In this document: positions 4,397-52,639 of the stretch, piece by piece
Layout of the letters: every line of letters begins with the position of its first letter
How positions within the stretch are numbered: position 1 is the first letter of the stretch
Virus record (IMG/VR): IMGVR_UViG_3300050120_000230
Location: 1-64,000 of that record
Length of the DNA: 64,000 nt
Reading direction: 5' to 3' (one strand)
Made by a program: the position numbers and the translations under genes
Notes under the pieces: generated by a model
Told to the model about the DNA's origin: nothing
The model's input: only the letters and a program-made list of their open reading frames with translations
Database searches by the model: none

Positions 4397-4790
4397 ACTC
4401 GTGCTGGAACAGAAGTAGCAGCACCCAGTCTTTTTGGAACTGGCCGAGATCGCCGCTCACTTTCTTGATCTGGAAGATGCCCGCACGCACATGGTCCTTG
4501 AAATCGACGGCTCCCCACCCACCGGCATGAACTTGCGGGTGATAGTCGCAGATCAGCGTGTCGGTCGAGAGTTGGATGTGCTGCGGGGCAAGCCAACGAC
4601 TGTGGACAAGATGAAACTCCAAACTCCACATGACGCCCTCGGAGAGATGCTCTCCGAGTAGGCGTTCGAGTTTGAAATTGTTCGCGTGATGGGCCGTGAG
4701 CCTCAGACCGGCGATCATACCGGTCTGACGAGGTTGCTTCCAGACGTGGTTGTAGATAGCCGCTACGTCTTTCGAAGTGGCGGCGACCAT
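4386..4790 (-). CDS. Hypothetical protein
   Basis: ATG overlaps the stop of the upstream minus-strand gene. Confidence 0.5.
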   Translation of the reverse strand: MVAATSKDVAAIYNHVWKQPRQTGMIAGLRLTAHHANNFKLERLLGEHLSEGVMWSLEFHLVHSRWLAPQHIQLSTDTLICDYHPQVHAGGWGAVDFKDHVRAGIFQIKKVSGDLGQFQKDWVLLLLFQHEFTE

Positions 4791-5002
4791 CAGACCAGAT
4801 CGTGCTTCCGCAGCGCCGGGCGAATGACGAGGAAGTAGATCGGCATCAGCGAGAAACCGACGAACTGGTAGGTCCCGGCCATGTCGCCAGCCATGTATTT
4901 GTGGTCGGCGCCGATGACGAAGAACGCGAACACGGCGACTTGAATCAGCGGGAACGCCCAGAAATCGCACGCCTTGTTGAAGAGTCGTTGGAAGGTGCTC
5001 AT
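4790..5002 (-). CDS. Small membrane protein
   Basis: Two hydrophobic segments; AGGAG upstream of the ATG at 5002. Confidence 0.6.
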   Translation of the reverse strand: MSTFQRLFNKACDFWAFPLIQVAVFAFFVIGADHKYMAGDMAGTYQFVGFSLMPIYFLVIRPALRKHDLV

Positions 5003-15978: not shown

Positions 15979-16473
15979 ATGCGCGAGTTCATGAATATCG
16001 TCAACGAAGGTCTGGCCGGAGAGGACGAGATGCTCAGTGAGGCAACACCGCGAAACTTCGGAAAATGGGCGGCGAGCATGGCCGGAGCAGCCGCGCTGGC
16101 GGCGGGGCTCAGTGGCTGCTCTGACACAACGTCTGGCAGTCCTACACCGGTTGTGAGCAAGGCAGATTGCGAGAGTGATGGCGGTGCCGGGTGCGAAACG
16201 GAAGCCGACAGTCCAGAAGGCGCCGAGGCTATCGACTATAAGAACGAGTGGAACAGGCGCCTTTGCCTTGCACAAGGTGGTGACTGGGACTCAAGTTCCA
16301 TGATACCCACCAAAATTGCCGATCACCCGCTCCGTGGGATGTGTAGCAATATAAGACAAAGAGATGCTTGTGCCGATGTTGGGGCCTGTCCCGAACTGGA
16401 TGATAAGGGCATGAAACAATGGGACAGGGATTGGTGGAAAGCGCACCCGAATCTCATCCAACCGAAACCGTGA
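15979..16473 (+). CDS. Late protein with N-terminal tag, internal lipobox and Cys-rich body
   Basis: TAAATA 5 nt upstream; MREFMNIVNE...LSEA...AAALAAGLSGC. Confidence 0.65.
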   Translation: MREFMNIVNEGLAGEDEMLSEATPRNFGKWAASMAGAAALAAGLSGCSDTTSGSPTPVVSKADCESDGGAGCETEADSPEGAEAIDYKNEWNRRLCLAQGGDWDSSSMIPTKIADHPLRGMCSNIRQRDACADVGACPELDDKGMKQWDRDWWKAHPNLIQPKP

Positions 16474-51174: not shown

Positions 51175-51229
51175 CGTTTGACCAAGACTCGTCACTGCCT
51201 ATATTTGGTTTCCCAAATTGGAGCCTGTT

Positions 51230-51937
51230 ATGAGTCACGCCTTTTACAACGTCGGCGGCCTACGTTTTTGGACGGAGCGGGAAATCCGCGTCCGCGAGCA
51301 AGCAATCGCCACGCTGCACGGGGAACTTAGTGCTGCGCTCCTGTCGCTGAACTCGGCTTGGACCTTTCATCGCATGGAAGGCCCTTTGCTGACCCCCAGA
51401 TCGTTCATAAGCCCTGCTTACGACGATAGTGACATCTTCCTGCTCGAAGCCAAGTTGGGCGACCAGCAAGGCTCCCTGCGTGCGGAGACGACTGCATCGA
51501 GCTATCTCTACGCCGAACATCTCCTGAAGACCGGCACCCGGCCGCCGGTGTGCGTCTGGCAGGCGGGCAAGTCCTTCCGCCGGGAAACCAACGACGGTGC
51601 GCGAGCGTCCGAACTTCGGTTCAACGAGTTCTACCAGATCGAGTTTCAGTGCATCTACAAGGTGGACACTAAGGCCGACGTGCGCGGCTGTGCTGAAGAG
51701 GCGGTCAGCAAGGCGATCAAGAACATTACGCGGGCTAGCTATCTCCGAATGGTGGACAGTGACCGACTTCCTGCCTACTCGCAGAAAACCAACGACGTGG
51801 AAGTGCTCTACGGCGACAAGTGGAAAGAGATGTGTTCGATCTCCACCCGCACAGACTTCCCGGTCGAAAATATGTTGGTGCTCGAAGTCGCCGTTGGCCT
51901 TGATCGGCTGGTGGTCGTGGAGAGTGAGGCGGCCTGA
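51230..51937 (+). CDS. Minimal class II aaRS catalytic core, GlyRS (alpha2 type)-like
   Basis: LRAETT, QAGKSFRRE (motif 2), LRFNEFYQIEFQ, WKEMCSIS.RTDF, VLEVAVGLDRL (motif 3); no anticodon domain. Confidence 0.8.
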   Translation: MSHAFYNVGGLRFWTEREIRVREQAIATLHGELSAALLSLNSAWTFHRMEGPLLTPRSFISPAYDDSDIFLLEAKLGDQQGSLRAETTASSYLYAEHLLKTGTRPPVCVWQAGKSFRRETNDGARASELRFNEFYQIEFQCIYKVDTKADVRGCAEEAVSKAIKNITRASYLRMVDSDRLPAYSQKTNDVEVLYGDKWKEMCSISTRTDFPVENMLVLEVAVGLDRLVVVESEAA

Positions 51938-52230
51938 TGGCCTATGGTGAATTGAAGCAGAACCTTGCAGTCGGCCAGTTTGTTCGAATTGGCCAGACTG
52001 GGAGCCCAGAACTCGATGGGATGATCTGCCGAGTTCTCGGGATATCGAACAGCGAAGCTACCTGCGATTTCTATATCGTGCTGTTTTCGAAGAAACTCTC
52101 ATTCACGAATGACATGGCCGGTGTCATCATTGAAAGCTGTTTGGAGCCTGCGGATGTTGAATGCCGGAGAATGGGTGCGGCTGGAACAGGCCCTCTCGGA
52201 AGTGACTGTGCATCACGAGCATTTTCCTGA
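51937..52230 (+). CDS. Hypothetical protein
   Basis: TGATG-coupled ORF. Confidence 0.5.
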   Translation: MAYGELKQNLAVGQFVRIGQTGSPELDGMICRVLGISNSEATCDFYIVLFSKKLSFTNDMAGVIIESCLEPADVECRRMGAAGTGPLGSDCASRAFS

Positions 52231-52400
52231 ATGCTTGCGCTACCGGAAACAGTTCAGTGCCATGGTATGGGATCAACTTTCTCTCAATGATCGCGTGGGA
52301 CTTGCGGCAGAGCATCTCTTCCATTGCGGGGTGATGGGCGGCGCGGCCAAAATCATCCACCAAGCCTACATTAAACTTTGCACTGGCCGGTGAGTAGTGC

Positions 52401-52406
52401 TAAATA
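52401..52406 (+). promoter_or_regulatory. Late promoter TAAATA driving the leader peptide-tRNA unit
   Basis: Same motif and 5-nt spacing as at other late genes. Confidence 0.75.
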
Positions 52407-52411
52407 GAGGC

Positions 52412-52459
52412 ATGTCCCACTCGGTGCACATTTCGAGACGCAACAGGCGAAGAGCCTAA
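52412..52459 (+). CDS. Candidate leader peptide MSHSVHISRRNRRRA
   Basis: TAAATA 5 nt upstream of the ATG; Arg codons AGA CGC (AAC) AGG CGA AGA. Confidence 0.65.
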   Translation: MSHSVHISRRNRRRA

Positions 52460-52487
52460 CTTGCTTGACGCCGCAAGGCGTCCTCAT

Positions 52488-52559
52488 GTGCCCGTAGTTC
52501 AGTGGAAGAACGCCTTTTTTCTAAATTGGTCGTCGCAGGTTCGAACCCTGCCGGGCATT
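52488..52559 (+). tRNA. tRNA-Arg(UCU), imperfect anticodon stem
   Basis: Acceptor GTGCCCG/CGGGCAT, D arm GTTC/GAAC, T arm GCAGG-TTCGAAC-CCTGC, anticodon TCT at 52520-52522; two U-U mismatches; no encoded CCA. Confidence 0.8.
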
Positions 52560-52563
52560 CAAT

Positions 52564-52639
52564 GATCCTTTAGCTCAACAGGAAGAGCGCATCTTTCCTA
52601 AAGATGAGGTTGCTGGTTCGAGCCCAGCAAGGGTCGCCA
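52564..52639 (+). tRNA. tRNA-Arg(CCU)
   Basis: Full cloverleaf, anticodon arm CATCT-TTCCTAA-AGATG, A20, discriminator G, encoded CCA. Confidence 0.95.

Follow-up and report, generated by a model that had tools for sequence, protein, structure and literature searches.

A conserved short leader open reading frame with codons matching the phage tRNA-Arg genes it precedes, and its candidate role in tRNA supply

Leader peptides, self-sensing decoders, and the locus compared with them

In the leader peptides of attenuators such as trpL, hisL, leuL, pheL, and pheM, the time that a ribosome dwells on cognate codons serves as the signal. Here, we describe a short open reading frame (ORF) in front of two transfer RNA (tRNA) genes for arginine at positions 52378-52639 of a 64,000-nucleotide (nt) stretch of the IMG/VR virus record IMGVR_UViG_3300050120_000230 (the whole stretch is hereafter the window). 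The window is a portion of a 415-kb contig, and its closest cultured relatives by DNA are the jumbo phages of Caulobacter and Brevundimonas (Dolichocephalovirinae). The usual explanation of tRNA genes in phages is codon-usage matching and, lately, the replacement of host tRNAs destroyed by defense nucleases; to our knowledge, the control of tRNA output by phages is essentially undescribed. The locus resembles the attenuators of amino-acid operons (trpL, hisL, leuL, pheL) and of pheST (pheM) in that a 5' short ORF on the strand of the regulated genes contains clustered codons cognate to the product supplied by the operon, dwell time on these codons would be the signal, and an RNA structure lies at the end of the ORF. 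It differs from trpL-type attenuators in that the regulated genes would be tRNAs and not enzymes or a synthetase, and the signal isoacceptor decoding and not amino-acid supply; moreover, it is phage-borne and probably leaderless, it has no terminator/antiterminator pair, and in the window no intrinsic terminator or U tract stands before the regulated gene.

Self-sensing by a decoding factor is known from prfB, the gene for release factor 2 (RF2), which is autoregulated by a +1 frameshift at its own cognate codon. The likeness is that a decoding factor senses its own activity through a cognate codon early in its own transcript, whereas the product of prfB is a protein and its read-out a frameshift, and the product here is a tRNA. 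We know of no leader ORF in front of the Streptomyces tRNA gene bldA. The regulon of TTA codons that depends on the bldA tRNA-Leu(UAA) (PMC10732093) is similar in that the tRNA serves a nearly unused codon, so that the rare codon sites turn regulatory, but regulation flows from that tRNA to its targets and not back to the tRNA. In Sinorhizobium meliloti, trpL encodes a leader peptide of 14 amino acids (aa), and both the peptide (peTrpL) and the attenuator RNA (rnTrpL) also act in trans (PMC7298713, PMC6614838); this system shares with ours a short alphaproteobacterial leader peptide followed by an attenuator hairpin, but it senses Trp, precedes trpE(G), and has a classical terminator. The closest resemblance is to the leaderless polycysteine short ORFs of mycobacteria, where stalling of the ribosome keeps an RNA duplex from forming (Canestrari et al., bioRxiv 10.1101/834739). 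In both cases, the short ORF is a leaderless first cistron (here, probably so) with a run of sensing codons, and a stalled ribosome is set against a duplex; however, the mycobacterial duplex hides the ribosome-binding site (RBS) of a protein gene and the signal is cysteine, whereas the duplex here includes the tRNA 5' leader, and no downstream protein gene or RBS is found on the leader strand. The full-text literature that we searched held no description of a leader ORF upstream of tRNA genes, in line with the remark in a first-pass annotation of the window, made from its sequence, that no phage example was known; absence from that literature is not proof of novelty. A leader-peptide-type element that would have tRNAs as its targets and lies outside the classical attenuator family is apparently undescribed.

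Codon content and conservation of the leader ORF

The region 52378-52639 is best read as one transcription unit, made up of a sigma-70-type promoter, a very short leader ORF that would be translated, a stem-loop, and two tRNA-Arg genes, all on the plus strand. A -35-like hexamer, TTGCAC (52378-52383), read from the sequence, lies 17 nt 5' of the -10-like element TAAATA (GCTAAATA; 52401-52406). The leader mini-ORF (MSHSVHISRRNRRRA; 52412-52459) has 15 codons and a stop, namely ATG TCC CAC TCG GTG CAC ATT TCG AGA CGC AAC AGG CGA AGA GCC TAA, and ends 28 nt 5' of the first tRNA gene on the same strand. This gene encodes tRNA-Arg with the anticodon UCU (52488-52560; Rfam RF00005, 54.6 bits), which reads AGA and, via wobble, AGG; the second encodes tRNA-Arg with the anticodon CCU (52564-52639; RF00005, 61.8 bits), which reads AGG. 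ARAGORN and Rfam agree on the cloverleaf and Arg anticodon of both, and by these programs the pair are the sole tRNAs of the window. Because the genes after the pair are on the opposite strand (convergent), the tRNAs are the only same-strand products 3' of the mini-ORF. The TAAATA box, the mini-ORF, a hairpin, and the tRNA pair had all been reported by the first-pass annotation, and each was found in its place by sequence, ARAGORN, and Rfam.

Three of the five Arg codons of the mini-ORF (AGA CGC .. AGG CGA AGA) are AGA or AGG, the codons read by the two tRNAs, as had been noticed. The accompanying claim that the long genes mostly use CGC and CGT turned out to be understated: in 23 confident genes (13,119 codons), CGC and CGT make up 74% of the Arg codons, AGA 1.0% (6 codons), and AGG 2.7% (16 codons), and a stringent gene set has 2 AGA in 12,126 codons. 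Because AGA is nearly unused and tRNA-Arg(UCU) and tRNA-Arg(CCU) are encoded nonetheless, codon-usage compensation does not explain the pair. Under the usage of the window genes, at least three AGA or AGG (AGR) codons among five Arg codons have a probability of 5e-4. Compared with noncoding background, however, the pattern in this one sequence is unremarkable, as at least three AGR codons are present in 16 (2.7%) of the 586 ATG-initiated ORFs of 8-25 codons that the window contains, a frequency that speaks for a chance ORF with no selected role. Promoter and start context together with conservation in relatives lift the observation beyond chance. Most AGA and AGG codons of the window reside in a few small ORFs, for example the one at 15979-16473, with 4 AGR among 8 Arg codons.

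Relatives were identified by metagenome and genome scans anchored on a neighboring class II synthetase-like protein (51218-51937). The anchor search located the tRNA locus in nine further metagenomic lineages, and the leader unit is present in ten, comprising the window, L001, L003, L015/L006, L016, L017, L018, L020, L089, and L090. The conserved unit consists of a -10 box, an ATG, an ORF with a terminal tract of Arg codons, a stop codon, a stem-loop, and tRNA-Arg(UCU) 17-32 nt past the stop. Beyond the window, the leader peptides are MTNPVHISSNRRRA in L001, MNTQARNRLRQSRR in L003, METFAAIHLRRRQRS in L016, MMTRRATRHRRIRR in L015/L006, MSSYAHSRQRRSRR in L018, MSNARIRQRT in L020, MTNRATIRLRRNRR in L089, and MSNARTNRRRAS in L090; the ORF has 10-15 codons in all but the expanded L017, which encodes 54 residues ending in ..ISNRRRPS. 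The leader of the cultured phage CcrBL9 was located through its tRNA match, away from the synthetase-like gene, and nine distinct cultured Bertelyvirus records align with this region from the ATG onward by BLAST. We read the leader ORF in four cultured Caulobacter phages, CcrBL9 (MTFTATIRTVSRRRR), CcrSC (MISTVTIRTVSRRRR), C1 (MTFSGTTRKTIRRRR), and BL47 (MTFSGTIRKTIRRRR), resulting in a set of 14 lineages (10 metagenomic and 4 cultured); RB23, C2, J4, and two "Bertelyvirus sp." records, which align over the C1 span at 87% identity, are BLAST matches alone and outside this count. The leader is unannotated in the cultured records with the exception of C1, in which a 45-aa hypothetical coding sequence (L106:211-348, CcrC1_gp395c) contains the 15-codon ORF in frame. 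Because a TAG in BL47 interrupts the N-terminal extension of this coding sequence, only the 15-codon ORF is conserved. An exact-pattern scan of IMG/VR with the 5' half of tRNA-Arg(UCU) returned only unrelated phages with large tRNA arrays, and besides the window and the L003 contig, a scan with TAAATA..ATG..AGACRNANCAGGCG gave just seven unrelated background matches with no nearby tRNA, adding no further lineages of this subtype.

The leaders that precede the UCU and CCU pair contain 47 Arg codons (AGA 18, AGG 10, CGA 8, CGC 7, CGG 2, and CGT 2), and 60% of these are AGR as opposed to 3.7% in the window genes. AGG is invariant across all 14 lineages and is never swapped for a synonymous codon. 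The cultured Bertelyvirus phages encode tRNA-Arg(UCU) together with tRNA-Arg(CCG), and their leaders read AGA .. AGG CGG CGG CGC; in a sample of CcrBL9 genes (5,077 codons), CGG accounts for 14% of Arg codons and AGA, AGG, and CGG together for 18%, such that four of five by chance has a probability of about 0.005. These comparisons support the conclusion that the codon content of the leader tracks the downstream tRNA set, AGA/AGG occurring with UCU and CCU and AGA AGG CGG CGG with UCU and CCG. Lack of conservation had been named in the first-pass annotation as grounds for abandoning the idea, a test that did not refute it, as in all 14 lineages the ORF persists with the same frame, an Arg-codon tract, and a place before tRNA-Arg genes; together with the start context and the UCU and CCG leaders, this conservation supports the claim that the ORF carries codons matching the tRNAs that it precedes.

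Codon content also bears on whether the leader yields a product that acts in trans, either an Arg-rich micropeptide or a released leader RNA of 65-77 nt, with no regulation in cis. On this explanation, the RNase P cut at the tRNA 5' end would set the 3' end of a small hairpin-protected messenger RNA (mRNA), and the rare codons would tie synthesis of the peptide to the co-transcribed tRNAs as a timer or coupling device. Every peptide indeed ends in a basic R-x-R-R-like tract, and the leader is intact in L015/L006 even though it is uncoupled from the tRNAs there; the hairpin finishes 1-5 nt ahead of the presumed RNase P site, which would leave the 3' end poorly accessible to exonucleases. There is also the alphaproteobacterial precedent of the 14-aa peTrpL and of rnTrpL as products active in trans (PMC7298713, PMC6614838). 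However, a peptide that merely needs arginines predicts the codons of the genome, 74% CGC and CGT, and not 60% AGA and AGG; the N-terminal half is poorly conserved, with lengths from 10 to 54 residues; and a shift to CGG codons when the partner tRNA is CCG is not predicted. We regard a trans-acting product as unlikely, if still worth considering.

Reading frame, start context, and proposed feedback

The distribution of codons and of insertions and deletions reveals a constraint on the reading frame. In the nine short metagenomic leaders, 26 AGA/AGG triplets are in frame, 2 are in the +1 frame, and none is in the +2 frame. The distance from ATG to AGG takes seven values (18, 21, 30, 33, 36, 39, and 147 nt), every one of which is a multiple of 3, and a 3-nt deletion distinguishes L001 and the window. 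L017 shares the start context and the final AAC AGG CGA AGA codons with the window, and its additional 117 nt, which are stop-free and in frame, are thus a 39-codon expansion. In addition, the third position of the CGN codon after AGA/AGG varies (A, C, T), and the cultured subgroups differ synonymously at codons 2 and 3 (ACT/ACC, TTT/TTC). These patterns suggest that the mini-ORF is probably translated.

The start of the mini-ORF resembles that of long phage genes. The motif TAAATA-N3-8-ATG occurs at 9 sites in the window compared with 0.41 expected from shuffles; at eight of these, the ATG begins a long ORF (164, 175, 199, 250, 434, 694, 1315, and 2495 aa), and the ninth is the mini-ORF, whose ATG lies 5 nt past TAAATA as compared with 4-6 nt at the others. 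The same module also begins long ORFs in related contigs. The eight long-gene sites (15968, 17719(-), 28664(-), 29456(-), 39761(-), 47891(-), 49998(-), and 54764) mostly have no TTGAC -35 element and often have CA or GA on the 5' side, resembling T4-type late promoters (TATAAATA). The proximity of TAAATA to eight long-gene starts points to leaderless or near-leaderless mRNAs for many genes of this phage, and because the mini-ORF has this start context in common with them, a leaderless mRNA is likely. Among the relatives, the ATG follows the -10 box by 5-7 nt in 13 lineages (all but L090), and 9 of the 10 metagenomic leaders have a TTGnnn hexamer with a spacing of 16-18 nt; phage C1 has TTGACG-17-TACGAG. 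The RpoD motif of Caulobacter has its 5' nt 34-37 nt ahead of the transcription start site (TSS) (PMC4287350); with this spacing, the TSS is predicted at 52412-52415, and 52412 is the A of the ATG. Caulobacter translates leaderless AUG-initial mRNAs, with initiation dropping approximately 2-fold per added 5' nt (PMC8459731). The mini-ORF, therefore, is probably the 5' end of a leaderless transcript with its TSS at the ATG or within 1-2 nt of it, as judged from promoter spacing. In L090, the ATG is 25 nt past the -10 box and so is not leaderless, and an AAAGG Shine-Dalgarno-like motif is found 6-7 nt upstream of it. The leader promoter itself was below the threshold of a simple consensus scan of the window and was not called. 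Four distant jumbo-phage relatives (L046, L039, L027, and L032) have a TTGAC-N17-CTAAATA box 6-16 nt ahead of their tRNA genes with no intervening ORF; because these tRNA genes have the same promoter type and lack the ORF, the leader is an addition and not a requirement for tRNA expression.

Frame and start context help to assess two explanations in which the ORF as such does nothing. In the first, the segment belongs to the tRNA precursor as its 5' leader, is not translated, and serves as a processing, stability, or insulating hairpin, and the ORF is an inherited accident of purine-rich sequence pairing with a pyrimidine-rich tail. AGGCG and GAGAC do belong to predicted stems, chance alone yields short AGR-rich ORFs at a rate of about 3%, and most lineages have no classical Shine-Dalgarno sequence at a working distance. 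An untranslated leader does not, however, account for the retention in 13 lineages of an ATG at 5-7 nt from the -10 box, which is the context of real gene starts, for seven ATG-to-AGG distances that are all multiples of 3 and a stop-free in-frame expansion in L017, for synonymous third-position variation in CGN, Thr, and Phe codons, for the relocated ATG of L090 with its gain of a Shine-Dalgarno-like motif, or for the leader-free use of the same promoter type by tRNA genes of sister groups, and we consider it improbable. A chance ORF with no selected role, which the background frequency of such ORFs in the window would allow, is highly improbable given 14 diverged lineages, indels in multiples of 3, an AGR frame distribution of 26:2:0, and a fixed promoter context. 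On this comparative evidence, the leader is a real, conserved element whose codons match the downstream tRNAs.

Two hairpins are predicted at the 3' end of the leader in the window. The first (52440-52464; GCAA-C-AGGC / GAAGA loop / GCCT-AAC-TTGC), on which the minimum free energy and centroid structures agree, has AGG within its stem, AGA within its loop, and the stop codon on its 3' side. The second (52467-52482; GACGCC-GCAA-GGCGTC) begins 7 nt past the stop codon and finishes 5 nt ahead of the tRNA, leaving a single-stranded 5-nt spacer, CTCAT (52483-52487), 5' of the mature tRNA end as called by ARAGORN and Rfam, which is the presumed site of RNase P cleavage. The second hairpin was annotated as lacking a U tract, which is correct for the window: the sequence after the stem is CTCATGTG, and a consensus scan called no terminator-like site there. 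L001 likewise has no U tract, and its second hairpin, GACGGCC-GCAA-GGCCGTC, is one base pair longer via both arms; certain other relatives show partial U-rich tails after the stem (L020, CGTTTTCTG; L015, ATTTTCT; and L018).

In every relative, a stem-loop is predicted that lies between the stop codon and the tRNA or spans them, and two classes can be told apart. In class A (L003, L016, L018, L020, L089, and C1/BL47), one long imperfect stem is predicted that has the codon tract as its 5' arm (e.g., GAGAC..AGGCG), the stop codon in or adjoining the loop, and the pyrimidine-rich tail as its 3' arm (..CGCCU..GUCUC, UUUCUG), which ends 1-3 nt ahead of the tRNA; in CcrBL9 and CcrSC, the inner stem alone is predicted, and its loop contains the stop codon. 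Class B (window, L001, L090, and L017) combines a small AGGC-GAAGA-GCCU hairpin, containing AGG and AGA, with a separate GC hairpin past the stop. The 5' arm (AGGCG, GAGAC) is nearly invariant and so offers no variation for a covariation analysis. An Rfam scan of the window segment and five relatives at permissive E-values returned tRNAs only. We rejected a T-box riboswitch or other direct codon-anticodon sensing, as the leader is just 62-77 nt and gives no Rfam signal; a minigene of the lambda bar type, as the ORF is too long and the phage supplies a tRNA rather than depleting it; and a degenerate tRNA remnant, as there is no cloverleaf.

Given this anatomy, translation of the tract requires the ribosome to open the stem, and a ribosome waiting at AGA/AGG (or CGG) keeps it open longer. 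A regulatory function is likely, and we tentatively propose, at somewhat less than an even chance, that the mini-ORF is a ribosome-pausing leader that senses decoding of the downstream tRNAs' own codons. The dwell time of the ribosome on the Arg tract would report the capacity of the cell to decode AGA and AGG. While on the tract, the ribosome would hold open the stem-loop, which reaches from the tract over the stop codon into the 17-32 nt ahead of the tRNA, and upon its departure the stem would close. RNase P binds the 5' leader through its protein and needs single-stranded leader nucleotides. An open stem could favor tRNA output either by read-through of a weak terminator or pause or by making the 5' leader of the tRNA more accessible to RNase P. 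When tRNA-Arg(UCU/CCU) is scarce or damaged, more of the phage copies would then be made, a negative feedback that would also answer cleavage of host tRNA-Arg. The further step, that the locus is a self-sensing tRNA operon in which a leaderless mini-ORF gauges isoacceptor-specific decoding and switches on the phage tRNAs when host tRNA-Arg(UCU/CCU/CCG) becomes scarce, for example after a tRNA-targeting defense, is possible but rather doubtful.

The sign of the feedback might also be the opposite. A lone stem-loop at the end of the ORF with no antiterminator is the layout of pyrBI, and the stem-loop here overlaps or adjoins the ORF end in the same manner. Fast translation would then keep a ribosome close behind RNA polymerase, block the stem, and permit read-through, whereas delay at AGA/AGG would cut tRNA output, resulting in positive feedback or a commitment switch. 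The U-rich sequence directly after the stem in L020, L015, and L018 fits such a mechanism, but the window and L001 have no U tract, and most AGA/AGG codons are inside the 5' arm or within about 12 nt of it, so that, from the general size of a ribosome footprint, a stalled ribosome would itself occlude the stem. We consider this explanation quite improbable.

Returning to the pausing leader with negative feedback, several points weigh against it. The geometry accommodates feedback of either sign, a pyrBI-type arrangement giving the positive one. Absence of a U tract makes classical intrinsic termination unlikely at the window, and foldings of the window and its relatives gave no conserved alternative pairing that would form a mutually exclusive terminator/antiterminator. 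There are two stem architectures rather than one conserved structure, and folding is modest: compared with shuffles, the window leader has only a moderate advantage (z = -2.26), and the leaders as a set have z-scores between -2.8 and +0.7. AGGCG is also part of the stem, so that its invariance could reflect pairing as well as codon identity. Initiation on the mini-ORF hinges on the exact TSS, here a prediction, as each extra 5' nt costs approximately 2-fold in Caulobacter (PMC8459731). In L015/L006, an endonuclease gene and a new promoter lie between the leader and the tRNAs and the leader is nevertheless intact, which fits either a recent insertion or a tRNA-independent function. Finally, the evidence for the unit is of one kind in all of its members, comparison of sequences, and the 14 lineages share ancestry, so that the counts are not independent.

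If the proposal is true, the locus would be the first attenuator with the decoder itself as the regulated product and would define a new target class for leader-peptide control, in which the decoder regulates itself. It would also imply that phages monitor the decoding of single codons, and, as a compact natural part, the leader would serve to report isoacceptor availability. Cultured phages of the laboratory strain Caulobacter vibrioides CB15 carry the leader, which makes the idea directly testable.

Neighboring genes and other tRNA loci

The tRNA genes and the sequences around them vary among the relatives. In the window, the anticodon stem of tRNA-Arg(UCU) has two U-U mismatches (52514-52530; CCUUU / AUUGG) that are flagged by Rfam, whereas this stem is normal in L001 and L089. 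In L003 (5582-5668) and L015 (4718-4632 (-)), and likewise in L006, a tRNA-like gene replaces tRNA-Arg(UCU). Its acceptor, anticodon (loop CUUCUAA), and T arms are backed by compensatory changes between both lineages; it has no D arm and an extra region of about 28 nt, and it is called by neither ARAGORN nor Rfam. The insertion in L015 (4731-5186 (+)), and likewise in L006, is an ORF on the opposite strand that combines a PD-(D/E)XK endonuclease with a helix-turn-helix and is homing-endonuclease-like. The tRNAs of L015/L006 have gained their own promoter-like site, TTGACT-16-TATGAT, and the leader ORF and hairpin persist upstream.

A noncoding element is conserved just 5' of the leader promoter (L020:5020-5130; L015:5350-5280 (-); L090:2600-2665). 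It comprises a T-arm-like hairpin with compensatory changes (AGAGG..CCTCT versus TAGGG..CCCTA), followed by CTACCTCC and then by GCACCTGWTCCWATCRTGCTGCT, and has no Rfam match. Between the synthetase-like gene and the leader of the window lie two small plus-strand ORFs, 51937-52230 and 52109/52154-52393, which overlap by about 76 nt in different frames; L001 retains this arrangement, and L003 has an extra ORF and an internal stop. A Pfam search with the small neighboring proteins and the 54-aa ORF of L017 returned no matches.

The unrelated IMG/VR phage contig L094 (191 kb) contains two look-alikes of the leader. Upstream of its tRNA-Glu(UUC) is an ORF of 16 codons (4459-4509), three of them for Glu, with a hairpin spanning the stop codon; upstream of its tRNA-Arg(ACG) are an ORF of 27 codons (4786-4869) that ends in CGA CGG CGC TGA and a hairpin. 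These could be due to chance, with 3 look-alikes among the 86 tRNAs examined outside the leader family. Given the look-alikes, which are unverified, the self-sensing operon could perhaps be one case of a wider class.

The synthetase-like protein used as the anchor (51218-51937 (+)) adjoins the tRNA-Arg pair. It is a 239-aa class II aminoacyl-tRNA-synthetase catalytic core with no anticodon-binding domain and has weak matches to the cores of GlyRS, HisRS, and PheRS. There is no nearby tRNA at the synthetase-like loci L008-L010, L013, L014, L019, L021, and L091 or at the bacterial loci L058-L088, and none beside the synthetase-like gene in CcrBL9 and Marchewka. Besides the window, the loci considered for this gene are L029, L030, L032, L033, L034, L037, L038, L041, and L010; in many more distant jumbo phages, it lies directly 3' of an amber-suppressor-type tRNA with the anticodon CTA. 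Homologs of the protein with 45-49% identity are encoded in Phenylobacterium, Devosia, and Caulobacter genomes.

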